From positions 10,675-74,674 of the forward strand of contig JALMLS010000626.1 in assembly GCA_038496445.1 (NCBI GenBank): 64,000 nucleotides of DNA. The letters are read 5' to 3'. The notes under the pieces are model-generated. The model was not told the DNA's origin. It searched no databases and saw only the letters and a program-made list of their open reading frames with translations. The translations under genes and the position numbers were made by a program. The stretch is from Trichosphaerium sp. ATCC 40318 (lineage: Eukaryota > Protista > Tubulinea). Positions 2,671 to 64,000 of the stretch are shown here, one piece after another (position 1 is the stretch's first letter; each line of letters begins with the position of its first letter).

Positions 2671-3714
2671 GATGGAGAGCATCTCATCAAACTCTTTTTC
2701 AAGTGTTTATAGAATAGGATGTTCTATAGGTATTGGTGCTACGTCGCAAGTATACAAGGCAGAAGAGAAACGAAGCAAAAAAAAACTTGCGCTCAAAATA
2801 ATTTACCCACATTTCTTTCGTGATCACGAGGACCTAGTACAGGCTGAAATAGAGGTTTTAAGCAATTTTAGACACAATAATATTGTTCGACTTGTAGACG
2901 CACACTGCCACAAAGGTACACGCCTACCTGCGCTAGTATATTATTAATTACTTTCCTTTAACATAACATTGTCTTTTTTAGATGTAGTAATGCTTGTACT
3001 CGATCGCGCTTTGCTTAGTCTTGATGCATTCTCAGCGACTTATAAACTACCCACAATACGCATAAAGTCTATTATGATGCAATGTTTAGAAGGATTACGA
3101 TATATGCATGGCTTGGGTTATGTACACAATGGTAAGCGTTTCACATCTTCCGATGTTTCTGAATAACATCCGAGAAATTTCTACGTTGTTGTCATCCTTG
3201 CTAAACGTTATGTCTAGACGTTAAGATGGGTAACATTCTTATTGGCGCCAATGGAACTATAAAATTGACAGACTTTGGGAACTGTTCTTTGATTTCAGAT
3301 GCTCAAGAAGGAAAAGTAAGACGAAGAGGAACACTTGAGTATTTGGCGCCTGAAATTTTTATTCACAAAAGATGGTCTGATAAACGTGATATATGGAGCC
3401 TTGGTCTGACATGTTTTCGATTGGTTACAGGGAATCTTCCTTTTAAAATATTGGATAATGATTTACCATCTTTTGTCATGGGGTTGACGTTATTATACAA
3501 GACAAAGACATACGATTGGGATTCTTTTCAAAACCAATACAAAAACTTAAAAGATGATCTTGTTTTATTTTTACAACATTTACTTCATCCCGTACCTGAG
3601 AGGCGTGCTTCAGCGGAAGAGTGCCTCGATATGGCTTGGCTTGGGGTGTCGTTAGACAGGGTAAAGGATAGACATTGGTTTAAAAAACGAGCTGTACATA
3701 AATTGACGAAATAA
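2671..3714 (+). CDS. Ser/Thr protein kinase (non-RD; catalytic loop HNDVKMGN)
   Basis: IGIGATSQVYKA, ALKII, HN|DVKMGNILI, DFG, GTLEYLAPE, DIWSLG motifs; 2 introns. Confidence 0.92.
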
Positions 3715-21879: not shown

Positions 21880-22825
21880 AGTTCACCGTTAAAAGTTGCG
21901 ATTAAGACTGCTGCACCTAAGTTGGGTTTTTAGTCTGCAAGTCATCGTGTCTAACCCGAACAATAATTCTCATGCTATGTGGTGTTGGGTATGATACATT
22001 AGGGTCTTGTAATAGTTCGCATTTGTTCACATTTGTTTCGAAAATATGGGAGTGGGAGCGAGTAGAGGCCCCTTGTTCGCTTTCGGTGGGGCCCGTCGCT
22101 TCCCTCGGGACAAGAATCCGACCTGCGCTCACAAACTATCAGCCATTGGTGGGTGTGACGTGAAATTTTGTAAAAAAATTCGAACTAAACGCCAACAAAA
22201 TATGCGAACAATCCCGGTTTACCATTTAATTCGAATACGTTTTAAAATGCAGTTTTTTGTTGTGAGCAAGTTATTTCTTGCAAGCACGAGACAAACTCGT
22301 GATTGTTTTGAGATAAAAGGAAAAAACCGAGAAATGTACTGAAATATACAGAAATTGAGAATCGAGAACAAATAGTCTATGACCTCTGAGAATGTAACTC
22401 GGCATGTATTATCTCGTCTTCGACCACAGATCCAAAGAGTCTCACAACATCAAAATCGTTAGTGTTTCAAACAAAGAATAGTATTTAGCCATTGCAGGTT
22501 GGGTGATCTAGGTATTCTATTTCTGTACTTGTGTTTGTGTGTTTTTTTCCAATAAATACAGCAATGATGAATACAAGGTGTTTGAATTCAAACTTACCTA
22601 ATGTTTTTGACCCAAATAAGTTTGGATTTGTCATGACAATATGATGAAGCTTTTTTCGTTCAAGGTGAGCGTACAAGTCCGACACTTTGTCATATTTATC
22701 CTTTGAATTCAATTAAAGAGCGTGTTTTGTAAGCCTTGATATTAAACAGGGCAACATCCACTTTTGTTTTGGTGTTGATTTTATTATTCATTTTGTACAG
22801 TTGTGTTTTTTTTTTTAAGTACAAG

Positions 22826-25800
22826 TTATTTTTTTTTGATTTTTGCCAGCAAAGCAGCACCTTTACATAGAATGTCAGTAAAAAATATCCAGAAACAAAA
22901 TTAAGTTACAAGAAAAAAAACTTACGCGCTCTAAAAACTTTGGATTGAAGGTAGTAGGAGCCGCCTTTTTCAGGGTCGTTTTTAGAATACAATTCAGTGT
23001 ATCTCTGCAATAAAGATTAGTTAAAGTGTAACAACAACAAAATCCAACAAACAATGATACTCGTAGTTTTAAAGGTTGAAAAAAAAACCCTACAGTTCTT
23101 TGGGGCACAAAGGATTCACGAACTTCGTTTAACATAGATGAACGTGCATCAGGTTTTTCCAGAAAAAAAAAAGGAAATGCATTGAATTAACGTTTCCAAC
23201 GAACCTTTTTAAGCAGTTCCTCTGTGATTTCTTCTCCAGGCTCAATACCCAGAATAGACATGGCATCATTAGGCTTCATCTCTTCACCTTTAAGTAAGCC
23301 ATCAGCTTCTTCTTCTTCAGGTGCGTCTTCAGCCGCTTCACCAGCTGCAGTATCAGCAGTGGCGGCTTCAGGCTCGTCTATTTCAACCTCGACTTCTTGT
23401 TCCTATTGAAGAAAAAAAAGATTAGATTTAAGACCAAACATAAATGAACAAAGCGATTATCACCAAAGAAAGAAAAAAATAAGAATACTTACCACTTCTT
23501 CCCACTCATATTCTCCTTCTTCAAGCTCATCCTCTTCGACAACAATGTCATCGATATTGATCTCTTCAAGCTCTATTTCTTCTTCAACTTCAATAGCAAT
23601 CTTTTCTTCATTGTCTGCCTTGTCAGCCTCTGGCTTAATCTTAACTCTGAATAAAGGATCTTTGGCTTCTAGATCAGCAAGCACCTCATCTACTGTCCGT
23701 TTAGTGTCTCCACTGGCTATCCGTTTAAATCTTGTTCTTTCATCCGCAGGATCTGGCCTTACCAGGGCTCCAAACCACATAATGATAGAGAAAGAAAACC
23801 TTTCAAACAATGATCCAAAAGTATTTGTAATTTGTGCCACTTGAAGGTCCTTCTTTTTCTCAGGTAGCTTTGTCTCATTCTCTGATGATACAACACCAGT
23901 TGGTGCCTGTGTAGATGCTGATGCAGTTTTGGTTTCAGGTTCAGAATCTGCAGCAGGAGTTTGATCTGAAGGCTTGTCAGACTTGTCTTCAGACTTCTTT
24001 TCAGCCGGTTTGTCACCTTCAGGCGCAGGTTGTTTAGGTTCTTCAGCTGCTACAGAAGGCTCAGATCCCTTGCCATCAGCTTTAGGAGGCGATGACACAA
24101 CTGTTTCTGCCTTATCTTCAGGTGTAGCTACATCATGTTTGGGCGTCTCGGGTTTAGGTGCCTTAGTTGCACTCTTTGATGTTTTTGGCTCGGTAGGAGC
24201 TTCCGCCTTTGTTTCCACCTTTGTATCAGTCTTTGTTTCAGTTTTGGGCGTAGGAGTAACCTTAGGCTTGTCTGGCTTGGCTTTATCTTCAGTTTGCTTT
24301 GAAGGTTCATCAGGTTTTGACTCTTCTTCCTTGCCTTCTTTCGGTTTTTCTTCTGACTTTTCACCGACATCGTCAACAGATTCTTCAGGTTTTGCTTCTT
24401 TTGCCTTGGCCTCTGCCTTAGCATGTTTTTGCCAGTCCGGTAGGTCTGCTTCAGCTTTTGCCTCAGCAGCTGCATTAGCCTGTTTTTGCCATTCTGGAAT
24501 TTCTTCTTCCTTTTCTTCCTCTTCAGGTAGATCAGGAAGGCCCATACGTTTCCGTTTAGCTCTAATCTTCTCCTTGTATACTTTTTCAGCTTTTTTCTTT
24601 AATTTCTCAAACATCATCTGGCGACCTATTCAAGGAAAGTGTCAGTTTTGAAATGAAAACTTTGGCTTTTTTTCTTTGTTCGTACGGGCTTCAAGTAACT
24701 CTTTCTTTTTGAGTTCCTTTTCCATTTTTTCTTGCTCTTTTGCTTTCTTTCTATCCTCTATTTCTTTACGCAATAACTCAAGCTCCATTTGTCTCTCTTC
24801 TATACGACGTTGCCTTAAAAGAAAAAAAAATTAGCCAAAAAAAAAAACAAACACAAAACGAAGAACTCTCTAAACCCAAACTTACTGAAAAGCTTCTTTT
24901 TCTTTCTCCGCTTGTTCAGCTTGCTTCCTAGCAAGTTCATCGATTATTTCATCTTCGGTCTTCTCTTCTTTACGTTGTTGAGCCTTCAGCTAAAGAAAAA
25001 GAAATTAAAAAAAAACCAACTTATGAAAGAATTTGAAAAAAAAACTACTAAACACGTACTGCGTCTTCCTTGGCTTGTTTCTCTTTAGCTTCCTTTTCCT
25101 TTTTTAGTTCCTTGTTAACTCTCTTATAAATACGATCCACCCTAAGCTCTGGGCTTTTAAGTGCTTTCTTTGCATCTTCAAGACGTTGCTGTTCTCTAGC
25201 CCGTTCGTCTTGCACCTTTTGATATGCCTTCACTAATTCTTCGTTCTGTTGGTCCTCTGGATCCTCTTCCAAACCTTTTCCATGTTCACGTTGCTCTTTA
25301 ATAGCATCAAGTTGACTTTGGTTGCGTTTTGCCAATATTCGCTTGACCTAAATTTACTACAATCAATACTGCATATTTACAGTAAAAAAAGCGTACCATC
25401 TTTTCTTTGAGCCTGACTTGTCTATAAGAAAAATCTTCACGCTCAAGTAGTTCTTCTAGCTGACTAGTAGCATCATGTCTAAACAAAAATTAACAACAAT
25501 CAAATAAAGAGAGAAAAAAAATTAACTAAAACCATTTATCAAGCAATACGTACCGCATGTCAGCTATGTCTCCAGTCAAATCAGACTTGTTGAGTATTTC
25601 TTCTAATTTTACAATCTCGTCTCCGAGCCTTGGGTAGATATTATTACGATAACATGAAAAGATAAAGCACTTGGCGTCAAGTCATGTTTTTTTGTTTGAA
25701 AACACAAAAAAAAAGTAAGATAAATTTCAGCGTACCCAACCCTGCCAAGGCCAGAAACAACAGCTGTTAACTTTGGTCCAAGATAGCGATTTACTTTTGT

Positions 25801-28274
25801 TTCAATATCTTGACATAGCGTAGCCTGAAGTTCAATAATCTTACTTTGCAATTCACTCATCTTTTTACTCAATTCATTAATCTCATTCTCAGTTTTGTTC
25901 AAATCAGAGGACGAACTCTTCAAGTTCAAAAATGTGGACGTCAATGCTTGTGTTTTCTTCATGAATTGTTGCTTCTCTTCATAAATGACTAAAATCTCCT
26001 TGTACGTAGGATGTGATAGAAATTCAGATACAGATTCAGCTGGGAGTGATTGCATAATAGATACAAAGTCGTGTTTGGTCTCAAGGTGAGATACTTGTTG
26101 CTGTATTTCTCTAAGGCGCAGGTACTCATTTTTTAAAATTTGGCCATCTAGAATAACATACTATTAGGATAAACATAATATAATAAAAACAAAGTGTAAC
26201 TGGTTCGAAGTCTTTTTTTTTTCCCTTCAAAAAAGTTTGCAAGTACTAACCGTTTGCAGTAGAATACGAGGTAGAGAAGAGCGTAGTTTTAATATTTCTC
26301 CACATCGCTTTGGCCACTTTAGTTGTACCTTGCTCAAATGGAAAAAATCCTGTAAAAGAAATAAGAAAGAGCATGTGAGAGCAGAGAGATATATACAAAA
26401 AATGAAGTAAAAGTGGCTCCTTGTATTGGTTTGCAGCGCACACACCTCACACGCATGTGCAATTTGATGCTGCTGCTGCAGGAAGCATATTGCTTAATCA
26501 GTAAACGTACCGCTGTGTGACATTTTATCGTCTGCTTCTTTTTTGGCAAAACTAGCAGCTGTACGTGCTCTGCTGTTTTCAAGAGTTTTCTCATATCCAA
26601 CCTTTGCAACAGATGGTGCTGTACACTCTTCAACAAAAAACTGAAAAAGCTGCCATGCAGTCTTTTTCTTAAGGTTTGTGTCAATGAACTTATCTGCCTC
26701 TAAATCGCTTATACGTCTAAGTTCTGATCTTCGATTTTCAATAGAGTCAAGAGTTTTAAGTACACCGCTCAAGTTTCCACCATTTTCTTTCAATATCTTG
26801 TACATTTTCTTTGCTCTTGTTTCTCTGTCAAGCATTTCTTTGTACTCTTCCATATTTTCCGTGAATGTATCAAAAGCAGGTTCTTTATAACTGCTACGAA
26901 TCTAAAAAATTGTGAAAAAAAATTGATTGTATTCAAAAAAAGAAAAATAAAGCACGTACCAATTCAAGTAGTGTTGATCTGAAAAAGCCTTGTTCTACTG
27001 GTTGTGAAGCATAGTTTTTTGGTTTGTTTAAATAATGGGATTCAATAACTTTATCTACCCACTGGTCTAGATACTTGTCATCATTCAATAACTTTTCTGC
27101 TTCAGCTTCAAGCTTTTCATGAATCAATTTTGACAACACAGACTTTCTATTATACAATGAAGCTCCTTCATACATCTTGAGCTTTTTTGTGGCTTTTTCG
27201 ATACCTAAAATAAAATTAAAAATTGAATCTCTAGATAACTAACATTGCAAATGACAACGTTTGTTTAAACTTTCAATACGGAAAAAAAATCCAAAAAAAA
27301 AATAAGATTTAAACAACAAACCTTCTTCCAACTCATTGAGCTTATAACTTTCCGTCATTGAAAGCTTTTGTATGTTCGCTACGATACACGTCAATATAAG
27401 GCAAGCTTAAAAAAGAAAAATGATTTGACGTACGTCGGTCATTATAATCAGGAATTTCGTTTGGGAGGAAATCTACGCTATTAATCTCAGGATCATATGT
27501 TTTGAACCCTTTTAAATGATGCTCCAGCACCGACCTTTCATTAACCTGAAGGAGAAAAAAAAAATCAATACAGTGACATATTTTTTGACTGAAGACAAGG
27601 TTTTCTGCATACTTCTGAACCCAGTGATCTAAAGTCTTGTCTCTTGTTAACAAGCTTTTCGTTTATAGCTTGCCACATCTTATTACGATCGGGAGAAAGA
27701 CCATTCTTGAGTATGACGTAAGAACCAAAAGAAGAAATAATTCGTCTTTTACGCACGATTCTTTGTTTTGAAAGTATTGCGTCTCTTTCAGCGTTTAGCG
27801 AAATGATTTGGTTGGACACTTCTGCAATCTTGGTATTGATTTCATCCTCTACAAGGTTTGTTTGTGCAACCCATGATTCTTTCATAATACTGATGAAGCC
27901 ATTGCTTTTTTCAGAACCAATGCGTTTCACTACCCTTAGCTTAGCGTTTTGTAGCGTAAATTGTTGTAATCGCTACCTTTCCGCAACAATCGCGTCCTAA
28001 CCCTCCATTTACTCGGTGGAAGACCTATGCGAGTGCCAATGTTGAGCGGCACGGCGTATTTGTATGCTTCGATTGGAAACGCATCTAAAACTCGTCAAAA
28101 TTGATACTACAATAATACAACGCACCCTTCGCAGCTGTTTCTGAAAAAAATGTTCTGTTTGGGTTATCACGACTTTTGTTATTGTGGTAGTCGCGCAGCC
28201 TGCTTCCCGCTGACCGAAATACGCGCTAAAGCGTCAGTAAAGTTTTAATGGCCAAAATATCGTACCAAGAACAT
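22826..28274 (-). CDS. Giant (~1,300 aa) coiled-coil/low-complexity protein with mitochondrial-type presequence and C-terminal Pam16/Tim16 J-like domain
   Basis: About 20 exons splice continuously in frame from MFL|RVFRSAGSRLRDY.. to ..MKPNDAMSILGIEPGEEITEELLKK|RYTELYSKNDPEKGGSYYLQSKVFRA|RAALLAKIKKK*. Confidence 0.8.
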
Positions 28275-28401
28275 CCAGTCAGCGTACTTTGTCACCCAGG
28301 TATCACGGCATGAAATACGTGAGATGAACTCAAAATCCGCTTGGCATTCGCTTAAAATATTTGAAAGCAACTTAAGAAAACAAAAAAACCGAACCCCAAC
28401 C

Positions 28402-29031
28402 ATGTCAGAGCCATCATCCAATAAGCCGGCTGTAAAGTCCATTCTCAAAACAAAAAAAGAGAAGCAACCAAAGAAGTACGTAAATTGAGGCTGCCAAAAA
28501 CACCTCCAAGCGTAGCTAGTTACCGATCAAACTTAAATTTTGCCCAAAACATTACATAACGTAACTTACCGTTTTATTGGTTAATTTGCTGTAAAAATCG
28601 CTAACACGCTAGGCCTGGTATAGTTTGGGATGAAGAAAACCTCACAGTAAACGAAGCCAACAAAAGTGCCACAATGAAAATTGATGAACCAGAAACACCA
28701 TACCATTACTTGTCTGAATCTGAAGAAGATGAACTCGAGGAGGATCAAGAAAAAGAACAGGTGCCCAAATTCCACTAGTTTTAGTTATGCCGGCTGACGT
28801 TAACGACCTTAGGGCGAATTGAACGTTGACGCATTGCAAGCAAAGCTCATGGTAGCTGCAGAAGCGCAACAGAAAGGAGAAGAACTTGCTGGTGAGGAAG
28901 CAAACATGAAAAAAGAAGCAGTAAAACGTGATGAATTCGAACGCAAGCGCAAAGCCCATTATCGCTTAGAGCCTGGTGTATTAACAAAAAAAGCAACAAA
29001 AGACAACACCAAGCATAACAAAAACTTGTAG
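28402..29031 (+). CDS. PPP1R2: Protein phosphatase 1 inhibitor-2
   Basis: KSILK (SILK motif), IVWDEENL, KIDEPETPY, FERKRKAHY. Confidence 0.93.
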
Positions 29032-34065: not shown

Positions 34066-37000
34066 CTATTGTAGTGCTTCGAAATTCTTGCGTTGTTTGG
34101 TTGTGTTCTCGAGTTCTTTCGTCAAATCCTCCAGCTAAAACAAACGCCGTTAGTTTTGACTCTTTACTACTAAATGTAACCATTACCTTTTTATTGTCGT
34201 TGTCTTTGACTCTTTGTGGAACTCTGTCGATGTAGTTCTGAGATGATTGCTTCTTCTTGATTCCATCAACTTGCTTTTGAACTTTTTGCAATATCTTATC
34301 AATACGCTTTAGTTCACCTTCAAGGTTAACTAGACCCTTCAAAACAACACAAAGATCGAGATCAGGGTTAGGAACAGTGACAGCAGCACCGGCAGGGACA
34401 GCTGCATCGAGTGCAATAGTAATATCTGCACTGTATGATAGGACTTGGACGATGTCATGGAACTGCTCGTACTTTGTCTTAATTTCCTCAGAATGGCACG
34501 AGATGACAAGTGGTGTCGCTGGTTTACGGAGCTAGTAGTTACAAGTCAATTTTACACTCTGGATTTATGTCAAAAAGGCTACATACCTTTAAGCCGTACT
34601 CAGCTCTCAATGCGCGAACAGCAACAACTGACTCCATGATGTGTTTCATGGATGCTTCGATTTCAGGTTGAGCACGTTCTTTGATGTAAATTGGGTAAGC
34701 AGCAACAGAGATTGAAACGCTCTTCTCGGTGGAACGCTTAGGTAGGCGTTGCCTAGAAAAACGATTAGAAAGACATAATGAGGCCCTAGAAGAGTCGAAA
34801 AAATAGAAATAACTACATACCATAGCTCTTCAGTGACGAAAGGCATGAATGGATGGAACAAGCGCAAGGCTTCTTCCATGCAAGTGTACAACGTTTGCTT
34901 TGTCTCATTTTGTGCTTCAGCATCCTTTGCATCCTTACTGTACATAAGAGGCTTGATTGCTTCGAGGTAGATTCCACAGAACTCGTAAAGCCAGAAGTTG
35001 TATGAAGCAGTTGTAGCTTGAGGGAACTCGTATGACTTCCATCCTTCCCCAGCTTCTTGTGCGGCGTTATTGAGCTTGGACATGATCCACTTGTTGATGA
35101 GAGTGTTGGCAGTTGTAGGTGCACTGTCGCTAGGTTTGAAATCTGCTCCACAAAATTCGAGACCAAGCTTGACAGAATTCCAGATTTTGTTGCAAAAGTT
35201 TCTGTAGGCAACAACACGCTTAATATCAAGGTTGATAGCACGACCTTTAAGTAATAATTAATAACGTGATTGATCTCATAATCAATATTACCTTGGCTAG
35301 TGTATGCACATAAAGCAAAACGAAGAGCGTCTGTACCACACTCGCTGATACCTTTTGGGTAAGATTTTTTTTGACCTTCCTTTGCGATTTTAATTTCTTT
35401 CTCTGGTAGATTACCGTTGTTCAACGTATCGTGCAATCCTTGTAACGTGATACCTTTTTTAATTCAATTAGTGTCAGAACATACGTATTGTCGCTAAGGA
35501 AGCCTAAAAAGTGTACCTTCAATAACGTCGATAGGATCTATAACATTACCAAGACTCTTACTCATTTTACGACCTTGAGCGTCACGAACCATAGCGTGCA
35601 AATAGATTTGCTTAAAAGGCAATTGGCCAGTAAGCTTTTGACCCATCATTACCATTCTAGCGACCCAGAAGAATAAAATATCGTGACCAGTCTCAAGCAA
35701 CTGTGTTGGGTAGAACTCCTGAAGCTTCATGTCAACAACAAAGAACTAAGACTATGTATAATTTTCCGTACCTCCAAATCCTTTGTTTTTTCTGGCCATC
35801 CTAGTGTTGAGAATGGGAATAATCCAGAAGAGAACCATGTGTCCAATACATCAGGATCTTGTTCAAGTTTCAATTTGTCAGTTCCGAATTTCTTGACAGC
35901 TTTAGCTGTAGCTTCTTCAAGCGATCTTCCAGAAACCCAGTTTTCGCCGTTAGTAGCCTATAATAATGCGTTAAGATTGGGTATATATACCAACAATAAA
36001 ACATACGTCAGGGGCATCTTTTCCCTCAACAGTAACTAAATAGGCAGGAATTCTATGTCCCTAATAAAGTCATAAATAAGAATGTTAAAACGAGTCGAGT
36101 GAATAAATACTGTTCCAAGTACGTACCCACCACAATTGTCTTGAAATACACCAATCGCGAATATCACCTAACCAACGGTTCCTAAAATAATTATAAATAA
36201 AACACATCAAGAGAAAAATGGTACCATGTAGCAACGTGGTTTGGAGGCAAAATCTCGAGATCACCGTTTTCAACAGCGTCAACAGCATCCTTAGCCATTT
36301 TCTTACAGTTAACCCACCATTGAGGTTTTAGTAAAGGCTCAATGTAATCACCTGACCTTGAACATTTTTTCAAAATCATCTTATGTGGCTTGACACCTAA
36401 AAAAAATAATCAAAAGTTTTGTTTCATTATCAAAACCAAAAAAACCCACAAAGACACATACCTTTGTAAAGACCAAGCTCGTCAAGAGCCTTTATAACAG
36501 CCTTACGTGCTTCCAATCTAGGCATACCAGAGAATTGGGCGCAAAGCTCGTTGAGGGTACCATCATCGTTTAGGATGTTCAAATCGCATTTTAAACCATT
36601 ACGTTTACCACAAGAGAAATCGTTGAAATCGTGAGCAGGTGTAATCTTAACAGCACCAGTTCCTTTTGTTTTATCAACAAGGATGCCATCGCCAATAATT
36701 GGCATTTCGTGTCCAGGGAGGAATGGATGGACGAGCGTTTTGCCAATAAGGTGCTTGAATTTATCATCAGGATGAACAGCAACAGCAACATCTCCAAGCA
36801 TGGTTTCTGGGCGTGTTGTAGCAACAACTATTTCTTCGTCTAAAACATAAAACATAAGAATAACTGTTTTTGGAAACGGACAACAATTGCTCTTTGATTT
36901 TGATTCAAAAGGTAATAAAAGAGTGTAACTTGCCTGAGTCTTTTACTTTGTAAGCAAACTCCCAAATAGCACCAACTTGGATTGGATATTTGGTGCCAGG

Positions 37001-53254: not shown

Positions 53255-55252
53255 TTACTTCATTTTATCCATGAACTGTTGAGCAACCTTTGTTGCTGTA
53301 GCAGCATCAGCTGCTTCAGCAATTACACGGACAACTGGTTCTGTGTTGGATTTGCGTAAGTGCACCCACCAATCTGCGAAAACGAATTAAAACAAAGAAC
53401 AATAAAAAGAAATATAAAACATACCTGCAGTGTCTATTCTAGTACCATCAACACTTGATAACTTTGCGTCTGGGTTTCCCCTCCATTCCTTTGCTACAGA
53501 TTCGATGACTTCATCAGCGTTACTTGTCACTGGAACCTATAAAATCAATTTATTAAGACTCCAAACCATTTTATAAAACAAAGCTCGGTTTACCTTCAAT
53601 TTTACAATCTCCCATTGTGGTAAGGATGCTTTAAGTTGGCTTAACGTTGCATCACCTTGACTCAATAGTTGAAGTGCTAGTGTGGCAGCTTAAAGGTAAA
53701 CAATGTAAGCACGTATTATCCGGAACAAAGGTCGTGTAGTATTTACCAACAGGTGCGTCTCTGCCAATATGTAAGTCAGGTAACATAACTCCTCCATTGC
53801 CCTAGGTTTTTTTGTGAATATAAAACGACTGTTTGGTCTACAAAATTCGTACTTCTCCACCAATGACAGCCTTGATCTCTTGCATCTTTTTAGCGACATG
53901 AATTTCGCCAACAGGTGTAGCAAATGTTTCGCATCCGTATTCCTTCGCTATATCATCCACTGCACGTGATGATGATAAATTCTTGCACACGGCTCCTTTC
54001 TTATGCGCCAAAAAGAACTTTACAGCCATAGCGAGCGTATACTCCTCACCTTAAATAAAGTCAACACAAACAAATGAAAAAATCGATTAACACACCGATA
54101 GGGACACCCTTTTCGTCAATAAACACACAGCGATCAACGTCAGGATCAGTGGCAATACCTTACACTTGATTAATAACAATAACAACAGGAAGACAACTGA
54201 GTAAACGAGTACCCAAGTCAGCGCTGTTTTGTTTTACAGCGTCACAAAGTTGTGATAAGTGAGACGGAATTGGTTCTGGCATATGTGCAAACACGCCTGT
54301 AGGGTCTGTATTCAAAGGAATCACCTGACACCCTAGAGTCTCCAGTAACTTTGTCATGATAGGACCTCCTGCGCCATTAACCTGTGGGCGCATTGTAAGC
54401 ACTTTGGCGTTGAGATAAAATATTTCGAAAAAAAAAAACCAAAAAGGGTTGTGCTTGGTACGTACTGTATCTAATACAACCTTGAACTTTTTAGCTGCTA
54501 TTTTAGTTGTGTCAATATAAGGTAAGGCCAACAGCTTTTTGATATGAATATCGTTAGCGTCTGTAATGCTTTCAGAGTGTCCATAAGTTGTTGGTGGAGT
54601 GACATATGTGAATTCACCAGCGTCAGCCACTTTTATAAATTCGGCTACCTTCTCTGGGGAGATAAACAAGCCATCTACGCGAATAACCGATTTAGAAAAA
54701 GAAATAAAAAAATTTGTTGTTCACTTCATTCACGTACCTGCGTCCACAAATTTGAGCCCATTCCACTCCACAGGGTTATGCGAGGATGTAATGATGACGC
54801 CACCAACAGCAGAGTAGTGTTGAACCATCACTTGGACAGTGGGCGTTGGTACAATGCCAACTTCTACCTACGTTGTAAACAACGTAAGAGGGTAGCTACG
54901 TAAAAGTACTTTGAAGCGACATACCGTGTCATAACCCATAGCGTTCAGAACGCCAATTACTACTGACGTAACCCAATGACCTAAACGGTTAAAAACAGGA
55001 ACAGAAGCAACAATCATCTTTGTGACGAAGTTTACAAACATACCTGATACTCTCGAATCTCTGCCAACAATAATTTTTCCATTTGGTCGCGTTTTACGCT
55101 GTACAGTAGCAAAAGCGGCCACATATTTGTTAATTACAACTGGTGTTAGTGACTTGCCAGCAATGCCACGTACTCCAGAAATGGAGACCTAATATGCACA
55201 TCAGACACTTATTTAATGCGTGTAGTACCATTAATGGCGCTTTAGAACTCAT
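53255..55252 (-). CDS. Alpha-D-phosphohexomutase (GlmM/PMM-PGM-like)
   Basis: SISGVRG, VGRDSRVS, ITSSHNP, TDPDVDR, VIGGE|GNGG, HLRKSNTEP motifs. Confidence 0.95.
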
Positions 55253-58105: not shown

Positions 58106-60755
58106 TACCTGGTTGAGCCTGCCAGGAGTGATAAGCTTTCTCGAAGGATTAAGCCATGCAAGCTCAGCAAAGAGGTATCCTCGGAGCCGCAAACGGCTCC
58201 TTAAAACGGTCGTAACCCACCCGACAAGACTAATAATGGTCACGTCATTTTGCACACAGGAACTTGTTTCCTAAACGCACTATAACCAAAACTCGTGGCC
58301 TCCCCCGCGGATAACCGGGATTAAAGGAAACCTGCGGCTAATACGTAATGCGCCTAGCGCTGCCGATGGGCCCCTCTGCTGCAAGGACCCATCGGTCGCA
58401 TCCAACGCTCAGGAGCGGACGATCACCCGATCCCATCTTGGTTCGCCAAGGGAAGCAGCCTCCCCTTAGGAAGCGGCGTCCGTACTCCGTCGGGAAGAGC
58501 GGCGTTGGGGCATGCGATGGAGTTATGAGGAGTTCTCTCTGACTAGACATGTTTCTAAAAAAAAAAGTTGAAGTTTACATAAGTGAAACTAGGTGAAAGA
58601 AAAATGAACATTGTTCAAATCTCGATCCTTCGCTGAATGTGCTTCTTCATAAAGATCATATCGATATAAAGTTGAGAGTTCTCCCCCTCCACGAGTCGGA
58701 AGGGCGGCCGACCTATCAGCCAGGCGGTAGGGTAACGGCCTACCGCGGCAGTGACGGGTAACGGGGAACTAGGGTTCGGTTCCCGGAGAAGGGGCATTAG
58801 ATACGGCCCCTGTACTTACGGGTAACAGCAGGCGCGTAACTTGGCCATTGATTGCAAATCGAGCCAGCGACTGAGTGTAACGAGGCCGGCATTTAAACCG
58901 GTCGTCGCAATGAGGGGCAACTGAATGTCGCCCTGAGAAACTATTGGAGGACAAGTTGGGTGCCAGCACCCGCGGTAACACCCACTCCGAAAGCTTATAC
59001 TTTTGCTGTTGCTGTTAAAGCGCTCGCAGTCCAAACAACGACACAGCTGAGAGGGACAAGGTTTAGATATAAGAATTTATTCTTTTGAACAAACCCCCCG
59101 ACTCTTTTTCATCGCCCGACCAGGCATAAATGGCTTCGCTCAAACGCAAGGTCAGTTTAGGCTTCGGCCGCTATGCCACCCACCAGCATCCTGGAATTGG
59201 GCTTTAAAAAAACAAAAAACAACACTTTACCAAGTGCGACGCTCAAGTCTCATTTTAACTAAGTATGAACAATATCCTGATATGCAAGTCTGAGTGAAAA
59301 CTCATGTTCTTCATTAAGGGAATAAAAACATTGTGAATTACAAAAAGTACTTTGAGGAAAAACTTGAGTTAGTCTTCACACTAATAAAGAACACACGATT
59401 ACTAGGTGCGTACGGGGTAGAGAGTGTGGTATCAGCGAGGAGTGAAATCTTTTGACCTGATCCAAACTACCCGAAGCGAAGGCGCTCTGCAAGGGCGTGG
59501 CCGGTGATCTAGAACGATGGTGGAGGGAGCGAAGCGGATTAGAGACCCGTGTAGTCTCCACAGTAAACGATGCCGACTGAATGGGCGCCGGGCAAACCAA
59601 GGCTCGGGGCCCGTTCCCACGGGAAACCGAAGTAATCGGGCCCAGGGGGGAAGTATGGTCGCAAGGCTGAAACTTAAAGGCATTGACGGAGCAACACCAC
59701 CAGGCTCTGGAGGCTGCGGCTCAATTTGACTCAACGCGCGACAACTTACCGGGATCGGACGCTCTAAGGGGACGAACAGACTGAAGGGTCTTTTCCGAGT
59801 TAGCTAACGGTGGTGCATGGTCGTTTTAGGCTCGTGGACTTATCTGTCAGGTTTATTCCGATAACGGGCGAGATCGCTACTGTCACATTGATTCCCCCGC
59901 CTCGTGCGGGACCCCTGTGCAGGACTGACGGCGAAAAGTCGTAAGAAGCGGCGGCTATAACAGATCCGGGATGCCCCCAGATATTCCGGGCCGCACGCGG
60001 CCTACACTGCTTAGTTCAACGGGTTCCTGGGCCGAACAGGCATCCGGGCAAGCCCTGAAACCGCCAGAACACTTCTTCACGACAGCGAGTTAAACCTCAG
60101 ATTTTATTATCTAAATACGACTACACTTAAACGCACCTTCGGAAACTACCACCTTCATAACAAAAGTCTGTCCTGAACCTAATATAAAGAGTTAACCCCC
60201 TCGTCGAGGCTTTTTAGGAAGTTAAATTCCTTTAATGTTAAGATGAGAAGCGCTGTTAGATGAAAACTTACATCTTTGGACTTGTTCCTTAGTGTAAACA
60301 TTGAAAGAGCTGTGGATCGTTTCAAATTAACAAACAAGGTTTCTTCTTCACTTAAATGCTTTGACTTGGAAGATTATATCTTTACCAAGGCAAACTTTAT
60401 TATGAAGCAAGTTTCTGCAATGTTCATAAAAAATACATGAAAGCGCACCGTGTGGTCGATTTGGATGTTAAGTGTGCTCAATGCTGCTTCTTCGAAAAGA
60501 CACATGCGTGCTTAGGGACTGGTTGCTGTAACTGTAGCCACGAACGCGGAATGCCTCGTACAGGTGTGTCATCAACGCACCTGGAATCTGTCCCTGTTGC
60601 TTGTACACACCGCCCGTCGCATCGACCGATGTGGGTGCGAGTGAGACCAGGGGGGACGACCGGCTTGCCGGTTATCGAACCTGCTCGAACTTGCGCTCAT
60701 AAAGGATGATGAAGTCGTAACAAGGTTTCAGTAGGTGAACCTGCTGAAGGATCAA
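58106..60755 (+). rRNA. Small-subunit (18S) rRNA, highly divergent, ~2.65 kb with large inserts
   Basis: tacctggttgagcctgccag, gattaagccatgc, gtgccagcacccgcggtaa, gaaacttaaaggcattgacgg, tgtacacaccgcccgtc, aagtcgtaacaagg..gaaggatca. Confidence 0.97.
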
Positions 60756-60995
60756 TACTATTGGTATTAAACCCTTAGAAGCAATTAAACCAACTTTTAA
60801 CCAAGTTTAAAAGAAAAAATTGGAGTATCAGCTCTGGTTTGGTAAATCTAATCTTACCTCGGTAAGTGAAGATGCAATCATCCTCTGCTGTGGTGATATC
60901 TTGCATATCTGCCAGCTCCACAACCGCCATTTTGGCAAACCAAAACACAGTCGTGGCACGACTATAAAGAACGTCAAGATTTTCGAAAGAAACCA

Positions 60996-61160
60996 AACCT
61001 TGTCGGTGAACGGTTAGGCACCTCCCCCGAAGAAGGCCATGGATCACTATGAAACCAGCCACCGGAATCGCTCTCATCTGAAGGTGGCATTGCCGAATGC
61101 CTCAGGCCGCGTTCTGTATTCTCACGAATCACAGGCAAAGGAGCGTGACTCAGCGACGCC
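60996..61160 (+). rRNA. 5.8S rRNA, highly divergent
   Basis: GC-rich island between AT-rich ITS1 and ITS2. Its 3' end gactcagcgacg can pair with the LSU 5' end cgtcctgagtt. Confidence 0.75.
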
Positions 61161-61364
61161 AGCAAAACAAACACTAAATTTATTTGGTGCTGCGTATGGT
61201 GTACACACTTAATCTTCTAAAAAAAGAAAGTGGTTGCCACAACTAATTAATAAATTGCCGGAAGTGATGTTCCTCCAGAACTCATGCCTAGCTTACTTAA
61301 GCGAAGCTTTAGAGCGAAGGTTGGTTTACATACTGAACTGAAAGCATTAAAAAAAACACAACTT

Positions 61365-64000
61365 GCGTCCTGAGTTACACTTGGCGACCTGCCTAAGTTA
61401 AGCATATCATTGGGGCAGAGGAAAGGAAACCAAAAGGGACTCCCTGAGTAGCGGCGAGCGAAAGGGGACAAGCTCAAGCCTGAATCCGAGCCTAGCATCG
61501 GAGTTGTGGGCTAAGGCGTGGTGGCTCTTCCAGACGTTGACGGGAATTACGCACGAGTCGTAGCCGTAGAGGGTGCGAGCCCCGTACGCTGTCAACCGAG
61601 GAAATAGAGTCCCATCGTCCAGGAGTAGTATGGTTTGGCCGTGCCATACGAAGTTACCGGGAGGTTACCCGGCAAGGCTAAGTATCGGGAGGTGGCCGAT
61701 AGCGCACCAGTACCGTGAGGGAAGACTGAAACAGCACTCCTCGATAGAGGGTTAAAAGACCCGAAGCCGGCAAGGGTACAAATGGCACGGAGTACGTAGG
61801 TGCCCTGCACCTAATCTGCACATGGCAGACGCTCTTGTAGCGAGGGAAAAGCGACCGGGGCCTTGTGCCCTGGAAGATTATAATGAAACAAAACGTCGAG
61901 GGGAAGGTAACATAGAAGTGACTAACACAAAAAAGTCATACTGGCTAACTGTGCTGTCCACACCATCCTACAAGCTGAAAAGCATAAAAACGTGGGTTTG
62001 GTTGAAAGGACATCAAAAAGCACTTTTAAACCTTTAAATGGCGTTGGTTCACTGAAATTACTGAAACCTCCGAATGTACGTCTTCTTCCGAAAGGAACGA
62101 AGTTCGTCATTCATCGTCCACAACCTCAATGAGGCTCTATGCCCTTATTGGGCCATGGCCTCCGTGTATCCCGTCTTGAAACACGGATCAAGGAGTTCGC
62201 CGAGCGTGCGAGGGTGAGAGATCAAACCTCCAACCCGCACAGAAATGAAGCCAAGGATAAGCTCCTAGGCCGTCAAGTTCTTTATATAAAAACAAACGTA
62301 TTACAGTCACATGTATAAGTTTGCAAAGATCGACATAAAAAACCGACTATGCTATTATCATGTTTTTGTTACGCAAGTAATTAAAAACACGTCACACCAA
62401 AGTAGATACACTTTGCCATCTCCGGCGTTGTTCTCTTGGCAGGCGATAGTACGTTGGGCGATACCCGAAAGGTAGCGATCTATACCCGAAAAGGGGGAAG
62501 GCGGGAGAAATCCCGCTGGACGCCCGTAGCGTTGCTGACGTGCAAATCGCTCGCCGGACATTGGGTATAGGGGCGAGAGACCAAACGAGCTGCCAACGTA
62601 GCTGGTACCGTTCGAAGTATCCCTAAGGATAGAGGGGGTCCGTGACGCCGGTCTCGTCTCGTAGAGCCACTGGAAAGAGGTATCGGAGGCCAAAGTTGCC
62701 ATCGACCTATTATCAAACACATAAGAGGCGACCGACTACAGGCCGAATGGCTGTAGTCACCGAGACGGTGGACCCCTATTGGGCCGGTCTTGATAAGCAG
62801 GACTGACGAGACGGTTTTAAACGCGAGCAGCAGCAAAGGCGCCCGAATAGGCAGTAACCAAGACAACGAAGGCGGTGTTCCAGTTTAGACAGCTGGAAGG
62901 TGGACATGGAAGTCGTCATCCTCTAAGGAGTGAGTAACTTCTCACCAGCCGAATTGGGACGCGCCGAAAATGGATGGCGCTAAACTGCCTTAGCCGCCGC
63001 TGCGCGATCGCCCCGGCTCGGCCCAGGGTGCGGTAGGACGGCGTGCTGGTGGCGTAGAAGGGGGGCGGTGGCGTCCACCCGGAGCCACCAGCAGTGATGA
63101 TCTTGGTGGTAGTAGCAATTGGAGCCTGGTGAAACAGTGTTTATCACAGCCAGGTCGCCCAAGTGGGGAAGGGTTTCGCGGTGATGGCATTCAGCTGCGA
63201 GTTAGCCGGTCCTAAGCCAGCTCCTAATAGAGTATACTGTTTGATGCTGGCAGACGACACCTTGTTCGGATGAACTTTACTGTTTTCTGAAGACTGGTGG
63301 AAGTCTGCGATGCTTTCAACTCGGCGAAAGGCAACCTGGTGAGTAATCCAGGGCATGGGTAAGGAGGATGCATTTGCTTTAGAAGTGGCAACACTGAGAG
63401 AGAGAGCGCACGCGAGCAACCACACTTCTGCGGGGCCTTCTCCCGCGCCTAAGCTATTCGAGGGAAACTCCCCGGAGCCACGTAAAGCGGCGAAGGGAAA
63501 GAGTCGAGGGTAGCTAATGGGAAAGCACTTTTGCTTTCTAGGGGTGTTGGTGAGCTCGTTCTCACGAGGCTGCTCCTCTCCGAAGCCGACACTTTCGGGT
63601 GTTCAGTGTCCTCCAGGCTCATACCGTACCGAAAACCGCATCAGGTCCCCTAGGTTAGTCACCTCTGGCGCTGCACGGTGTAAACGGCGTAAGGGAAGTC
63701 GGCATACGCGGCCCGTAACTTCGGGAAAAGGGCTGGCTCTGCTGACCGGGACCCGGGACGACGTGCGTCTGCGCTACTTCAGTGTAGCCCCTTCGGGAAC
63801 GGCGCACAGTCCCTGCAAAGAGGTCCACAAGCGGATCATGGCGGAACTCTCAGAAGCTTAGAGAACCCAACTGTTTACTTAAAACTTAGCCCTTTGATAC
63901 CTCCTCTGAGGTCTGACAAAGGGTGACTCCTGCCCAGTGCTTTGAAAGTTGCGGTGCTTAATTTCACCCAAGCACGGGTTAACGGCGGGAGTAACTATGA
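61365..64000 (+). rRNA. Large-subunit (28S) rRNA, 5' part, truncated by window end
   Basis: ttaagcatatc, agtagcggcgagcgaa, gtaccgtgagggaa, ccgtcttgaaacacgga, cgtaacttcgggaaaagg, aacggcgggagtaactatga. Confidence 0.97.

Follow-up and report, generated by a model that had tools for sequence, protein, structure and literature searches.

A predicted 1323-residue protein of Trichosphaerium that ends in a Pam16-type J-like domain

A stretch of 64,000 nucleotides from Trichosphaerium sp. ATCC 40318 (assembly GCA_038496445.1, contig JALMLS010000626.1, positions 10,675 to 74,674 of the forward strand; hereafter the window, with position 1 as its first letter) carries on its minus strand a long, intron-rich gene whose last exons encode a sequence of the Pam16 family. 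Placement of public RNA contigs on this region indicates that there is one gene, in which the Pam16 exons are spliced onto the exons upstream of them. Canonical Pam16 has about 110-150 residues and opens directly with the hydrophobic segment that docks on the translocase; few components of the import motor are as uniform, the protein being small, confined to a single domain, and found in almost every eukaryote. The architecture found here is real and new, built with a domain of a known type, and it departs from the canonical protein both in its size and in the absence of the N-terminal segment at the protein start. At 1323 residues the product is about ten times as large as usual, as an initial annotation made from the DNA alone had claimed. 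No published description of such a giant Pam16 architecture was found in the literature. The reading that we favor, and consider fairly probable, is that this one gene yields one protein of 1323 residues, in which a J-like module sits on a rod-and-linker extension and which would be mitochondrial, as that annotation proposed.

Transcripts spanning the gene

The gene model was assembled from stop-free stretches by trying combinations of GT..AG introns on the minus strand. It runs from 28274 to 22826 in 19 exons, which are separated by 18 GT..AG introns of 40-200 nucleotides (nt) and together provide 1323 codons without a stop; the initial annotation had counted about 20 such exons, and the coordinates agree. 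Translation would begin with the ATG at 28274 and end with the TAA at 22828-22826. The 3' end of the transcript lies near 22778, giving the whole gene an extent of 22778..28274 (minus strand) and a 3' untranslated region (UTR) of about 48 nt: the contigs labeled X1, X3, and X4 all stop at 22773-22778 and then continue into adapter sequence.

Evidence for splicing comes from Logan contigs of four public runs that bear the same species label, placed on 22650-28550. An intron was taken as confirmed when contigs show a joint whose ends read CT..AC, which is GT..AG on the minus strand, or when adjacent pieces of one contig flank it. By this criterion 13 of the 18 introns are confirmed (introns 3, 5, 6, 7, 9, 10, and 12-18), with spliced contigs from three runs in two studies. 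In particular, an X3 contig of 942 nt and an X4 contig of 1109 nt each proceed from exon 16 (24199 or 24052 to 23492) to 23401..23205, then to 23004..22924, and finally to 22858..22778. The junction between exons 16 and 17, across intron 16 (23403-23492), is also present in an X1 contig, as a loose end, and introns 17 (23005-23204) and 18 (22861-22925) are confirmed in X1, X3, and X4. Further upstream, exons 12 to 16 are linked one after another by different contigs of X3 and X4; introns 13, 14, and 15 are crossed by one X3 and one X4 contig, each of which extends from 25345 down to 24170 or 24393. The initial annotation had named as its refutation a short gene made up of the Pam16 exons on their own; in these data there is no such gene, because the contigs splice those exons onto the upstream exons. 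Near the J-like exons, no canonical Pam16 first exon is visible in any frame.

It might be argued that the join is an artefact, in which two adjacent genes have been linked by chimeric contigs or by read-through transcripts. Logan contigs can indeed be chimeric, and X1 has some odd low-depth joins. This explanation is largely refuted, however, and we give it hardly any weight. Three runs from two studies show the identical junction of exon 16 to exon 17, with canonical GT..AG ends; it keeps the frame, and the acidic tract that begins in exon 16 goes on without a stop through 41 codons of exon 17, up to M1262. In addition, the introns, at up to 200 nt, are too small to hold a promoter or UTRs, and the J-like exons as a gene of their own would encode merely 62 residues.

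The case of Acanthamoeba castellanii provides a useful comparison. There too a long annotated protein, the Pam16B "fusion" XP_004368030, terminates in Pam16, but transcript data have revealed an annotation error that joins ankyrin/SET exons, and the real Pam16B product is of normal size (PMC5747110). Thus, transcripts refute the join in Acanthamoeba, whereas in Trichosphaerium they support it. As a candidate relative the Acanthamoeba "fused Pam16B" was set aside, being an annotation error according to its own authors and unrelated to the present gene.

The C-terminal J-like domain

Searches for families and relatives were run on exon pieces, while the 1323-residue model was used for frame, length, composition, and the effects of single-nucleotide polymorphisms (SNPs). 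Exon 18 alone matches the Pfam family PF03656 (Pam16) with an E-value of 1.3e-8 and 35.4 bits, above the cut-off of 30.3, over profile positions 77-104 of 127. Against the PDB the same exon finds yeast Tim16 (2GUZ_B, E 1.2e-6), aligned to residues 26-53; its match to Tim14 (2GUZ_A) has an E-value of 0.21, so that the Tim16 match is better by about five orders of magnitude. The Pam16 family signature NDxxKGGSxYLQSKVxRA, which the initial annotation had recognized as that of Pam16/Magmas, is present in this C-terminal domain. The domain as delimited here (22829..23279, minus strand) comprises the 62 residues 1262-1323 and reads MKPNDAMSILGI...NDPEKGGSYYLQSKVFRARAAL at the C-terminus of the protein; it is encoded by the end of exon 17 (23279-23205), by exon 18 (23004-22926), and by exon 19 (22860-22829). 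The stretch MKPNDAMSILGIEPGEEITEELLKK, at the end of exon 17, lies at the right distance to form the first J-like helix, corresponding to profile positions of about 52-76.

The HPD tripeptide is required for stimulation of Hsp70, and Pam18/Tim14, the J-protein partner of Pam16, has a transmembrane anchor. The HPD tripeptide is absent from the domain described here, in which the aligned position reads SKNDPEKGGS. The presence of NDPEKGGS rather than HPD would therefore place the domain with the regulatory, non-stimulating J-like type. Judged from its sequence, then, the C-terminus is a Pam16/Tim16-type J-like domain without HPD, one that seems highly conserved and very close to that of canonical Pam16.

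The signature and the lack of HPD are shared with Pam16/Tim16 (yeast Pam16, 2GUZ chain B; human Magmas/PAM16; PF03656). The differences lie in what surrounds the domain: here it terminates a protein of 1323 residues, whereas the canonical protein is small, and the nearest hydrophobic helix is 130 residues upstream, with a strongly acidic tract between. The likeness to Pam18/Tim14 consists of a related J-type fold and the weak match to 2GUZ_A; in contrast to Pam18/Tim14, the giant protein has neither HPD nor a transmembrane segment. Searched exon by exon, the protein contains no match to positions 1-76 of the PF03656 profile. Of the initial name, "giant Pam16", the size and the J-like domain stand, but the canonical N-terminal segment is not recognizable, and because of this the product would be more aptly described as a giant protein that bears a Pam16 J-like domain than as an enlarged Pam16. 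(The hydrophobic helix discussed below was considered as a displaced Pam16 N-terminal segment; the spacing AQI...R.F looks alike by eye, the profile gives no support, and the idea was set aside as speculation.)

The extension and its variation among strains

The start of the protein depends on three small exons. Exon 1 (28266..28274) encodes residues 1-3, ATGTTCTTG, and is followed by intron 1 (28226-28265; 40 nt, GT..AG); exon 2 (28126..28225) encodes residues 4-37 and starts with RVFRSAGSRLRDYHNNKSR; intron 2 (28085-28125) has 41 nt; exon 3 (27977..28084) encodes residues 37-73 and ends with PPSKWRVRTRLLRK. Exons 1 and 2 are without RNA cover, whereas an X1 contig covers 27977-28043 of exon 3 and is spliced to 27929, across intron 3 (27930-27976). 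The ATG at 28274 was chosen because it is the sole one able to open the frame of exon 3. With a codon-usage table trained on exons 4-15 of this gene, exons 1-3 taken jointly have log-odds of +6.8 in frame versus -12.8 and -14.4 in the other frames, which lends weak support to them, and exon 2 alone scores about zero. By the same measure exon 17 is strongly coding (+49.6 in frame versus -5.3 and -68.3). The donor sequences of the gene are very uniform, 10 of the 18 introns (22859-28265) starting with GTACG. The shortest RNA-confirmed intron of the gene has 47 nt, compared with 40 and 41 nt for the unconfirmed 5' introns 1 and 2.

Residues 1-72 form an Arg-rich (Arg/Ser) region that begins MFLRVFRSAGSRLR and has a net charge of +11. 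The first 14 residues include four Arg and no acidic residue and have a high helical hydrophobic moment. The presequence-like start that had been described is thus present in the sequence, on exons that lack RNA cover. It is followed by residues 73-669, encoded by exons 4-12 (25397..27929, minus strand; exons 4-6 at 27929-27613, 27545-27434, and 27378-27322; exons 7-9 at 27204-26960, 26901-26511, and 26349-26251; exons 10-12 at 26147-25736, 25628-25554, and 25478-25397). This region is predicted to be alpha-helical, with heptad-like segments at residues 90-135, 481-512, and 545-600. A single-sequence AlphaFold2 model of exon 8 is all-helical, at a low confidence (predicted local distance difference test, pLDDT, of 51).

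A charged helix rich in E, K, and R (residues ~670-870; 24543..25347, minus strand) is encoded by exons 13-15 (25347-25060, 24989-24886, and 24813-24686) together with the start of exon 16 (from 24625). In 50-residue windows over residues 726-875, E, K, and R make up 50-60% of the sequence, and a crude scan gives no heptad signal. Known ER/K single alpha helix spacers have long runs in which E alternates with K/R, and they lack a hydrophobic seam; compared with these by composition and by the crude scan, residues ~670-870 look like such a spacer. The heptad-like segments and this E/K/R helix region together correspond to what the initial annotation called long coiled coils.

The remaining elements that had been listed upstream of the J-like domain, a KEPT-rich disordered tract, a short hydrophobic segment, and an acidic tract, are all present. 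The KEPT-rich tract lies inside exon 16 (23853..24542, minus strand; residues 871-1100), is 57% K, E, P, and T, with 30 Pro, and is probably disordered; it contains short 12-nt tandem repeats. After it comes a hydrophobic or amphipathic helix (23760..23861, residues 1098-1131) with the core FSFSIIMWFGALV (23798-23760, residues 1119-1131). This core is the single hydrophobic peak of the protein, with a 13-residue mean of 2.02 and a best 19-residue mean of 1.24 on the Kyte-Doolittle scale. With this 19-residue value, the segment is too short and too weakly hydrophobic to span a membrane; none of the segments of the 1323-residue protein reaches transmembrane-like hydropathy. AlphaFold2, applied without an alignment to the hydrophobic/acidic piece, predicts one helix at the hydrophobic region (pLDDT 64-72; 56 for the piece overall). 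The acidic tract (23280..23627, residues 1176-1261) has a net charge of -38 and spans intron 16, from exon 16 into exon 17.

The RNA contigs derive from slightly different strains, and their differences can be read as SNP effects on the gene model. All six differences within residues 215-716 are synonymous, five of them falling in the span of exons 4-12. In residues 947-1137, on the other hand, nine of 11 differences are non-synonymous and two synonymous; the KEPT tract (residues 947-1092) accounts for eight of the non-synonymous and two synonymous ones. There is also an in-frame 3-nt insertion between strains in this tract, behind 23949. The Pam16 exons have no strain differences among the contigs. 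Purifying selection thus acts on the N-terminal region, and the KEPT linker changes rapidly. Taken together, this is what would be expected if one real protein combined an N-terminal domain under constraint, a linker that evolves fast, and a C-terminal domain that is conserved. (An X1 contig steps back by 120 nt at 24127-24246, minus strand, which would be an in-frame duplication of 40 residues carried by another strain, or else an artefact of assembly across the short internal repeats.)

Searches for relatives of the extension returned little. When every sizeable exon was compared with Pfam and NCBIfam, exon 18 alone gave a real match, and the remainder was coiled-coil noise. An exhaustive HMMER search with exon 8 against 1.84 billion representatives gave a lone match, to an NB-ARC protein from bacteria that has a long array of repeats; it is spurious, because five repeat matches inflate the score. 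Word-index protein searches, for which the queries were exon 10, exon 17, and the C-terminal portion of exon 16, found nothing, within a length filter that excludes full-length relatives, and look-alike searches of the ESM Atlas with two pieces yielded nothing usable. A metagenome scan with exon 8 produced one locus, which is bacterial and in which the match is antisense to a flagellin gene, a false positive. Public assemblies contain no record with an exact match to a 385-residue open reading frame (ORF). In these searches, then, the ~1260 residues upstream of the J-like domain appear to have no detectable relatives.

Proposed role of the module and neighboring genes

A possible mechanism can be outlined. 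The presequence-like start may direct import into the mitochondrial matrix. There the J-like domain would pair with a Pam18-type J domain in the manner of canonical Pam16 in 2GUZ, and would thereby regulate, rather than stimulate, mitochondrial Hsp70. The hydrophobic helix may tie the C-terminal module to the inner membrane or to the translocase, and the rod-and-linker extension would place or anchor it with respect to any partner bound by the N-terminal domain.

Several observations weigh against a single 1323-residue mitochondrial protein of this kind. Mitochondrial location and binding to Pam18 or to the mitochondrial Hsp70 motor are proposals, as is the tether between that motor and another mitochondrial structure that the initial annotation put forward. 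Contigs provide no cover over 28044-28362, leaving coding exons 1 and 2 without RNA support, and because of this gap these two exons count as inferred. Introns 1, 2, 4, 8, and 11 have no RNA joints among the contigs listed and depend on frame continuity and splice consensus. None of the placed Logan contigs contains the whole gene. The library type of the runs is not recorded; they were treated as complementary DNA from the behavior of their contigs, because these are free of introns and end in adapter sequence. Within the domain itself, the short 27-residue first J-like half, searched alone, has no match in Pfam or the PDB, and the N-terminal part of the Pam16 profile (positions 1-50) remains unmatched in exon 16, including the hydrophobic region, at E-values up to 10. 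Finally, contig depth over the last 1.1 kb is about three times that of the next contigs upstream, which may reflect 3' bias or a shorter 3' transcript.

The last point bears on an alternative in which the gene is a fusion with a small working product: transcription initiated within exon 16, or processing of the imported protein by cleavage, would free the last 200-225 residues as an ordinary Pam16, and the upstream part would be separate. The C-terminal module does have its hydrophobic helix, linker, and J-like domain in the same order as canonical Pam16, the J-like domain is apparently very close to that of canonical Pam16, and in X3 and X4 the contig depth is about 40 over 22778-24199, compared with about 14 next upstream. 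Contig depth, however, is unfit for ranking the regions of one gene, and the step is accounted for by 3' bias. Between the step and M1262, the sole in-frame Met is M1125, which falls in the middle of the hydrophobic helix; that helix has no match to the N-terminal profile of Pam16, and both the frame and the acidic tract are continuous across intron 16. A small product therefore seems unlikely to us.

A second alternative is that the protein is a repurposed paralogue outside import, with an ordinary Pam16 elsewhere in the genome; its J-like domain would engage a Pam18-like partner for a different task, for instance maintenance or expression of the mitochondrial genome, or the protein would act outside mitochondria altogether. 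There is a precedent for this, which the initial annotation cited correctly: in Trypanosoma brucei, TbPam16 and TbPam18 function in replication of mitochondrial DNA and not in import (PMC11349236). These are small integral inner-membrane proteins (PMC11349236), and the likeness extends to the use of Pam16-type J-like proteins outside import; neither sequence nor architecture links them to the extension of the giant protein. The unmatched N-terminal segment of canonical Pam16, and a presequence-like start that is carried on exons without RNA cover, would also suit a repurposed paralogue. Against this stand the J-like domain, which appears highly conserved and not divergent, the absence of a second Pam16 signature within the 64-kb window, and the lack of evidence for another process, and we judge such a paralogue improbable.

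The favored reading, one protein with its J-like module on a rod-and-linker extension, also has a bolder form, in which this is the organism's sole Pam16, built permanently into a 150-kDa rod-and-linker protein whose N-terminal domain physically links the TIM23-PAM motor to some other structure in the matrix, such as the nucleoid, the mitoribosome, or the RNA-editing machinery. We regard that form as quite improbable; if this were indeed the sole Pam16 of the lineage, it would constitute a natural experiment on how well the motor tolerates a huge appendage. If instead the protein is a paralogue, it would be the second case, after the trypanosomes, of a Pam16-type protein in a new use. A transcript-supported extension of ~1260 residues under purifying selection shows that a large scaffold can carry the J-like domain as a module, and it offers a handle on what else the Pam16-Pam18 pair can couple to and on whether the extension is a spacer.

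The gene has a divergent neighbor at 28403-28775 (plus strand), which starts about 128 bp from the ATG of the giant gene and encodes a homologue of protein phosphatase inhibitor 2 (IPP-2; PF04979, E 8e-11). The first intron of this neighbor (28477-28613) is confirmed by loose ends of X3 and X4 contigs. Elsewhere in the window, exon-sized ORFs encode a class I aminoacyl-tRNA synthetase editing domain (34646-36855, minus strand), a phosphoglucomutase/phosphomannomutase domain (54163-54669, minus strand), and a protein kinase domain (3226-3711, plus strand), which look like ordinary housekeeping neighbors. At the far end, 58106-64000 (plus strand) holds a eukaryotic small-subunit rRNA gene, unusually long at 2652 nt compared with the 1831 positions of the model, followed by the start of the large-subunit rRNA. 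The rRNA genes thus share a piece of DNA with protein-coding genes, and the GC content rises to about 50% there.

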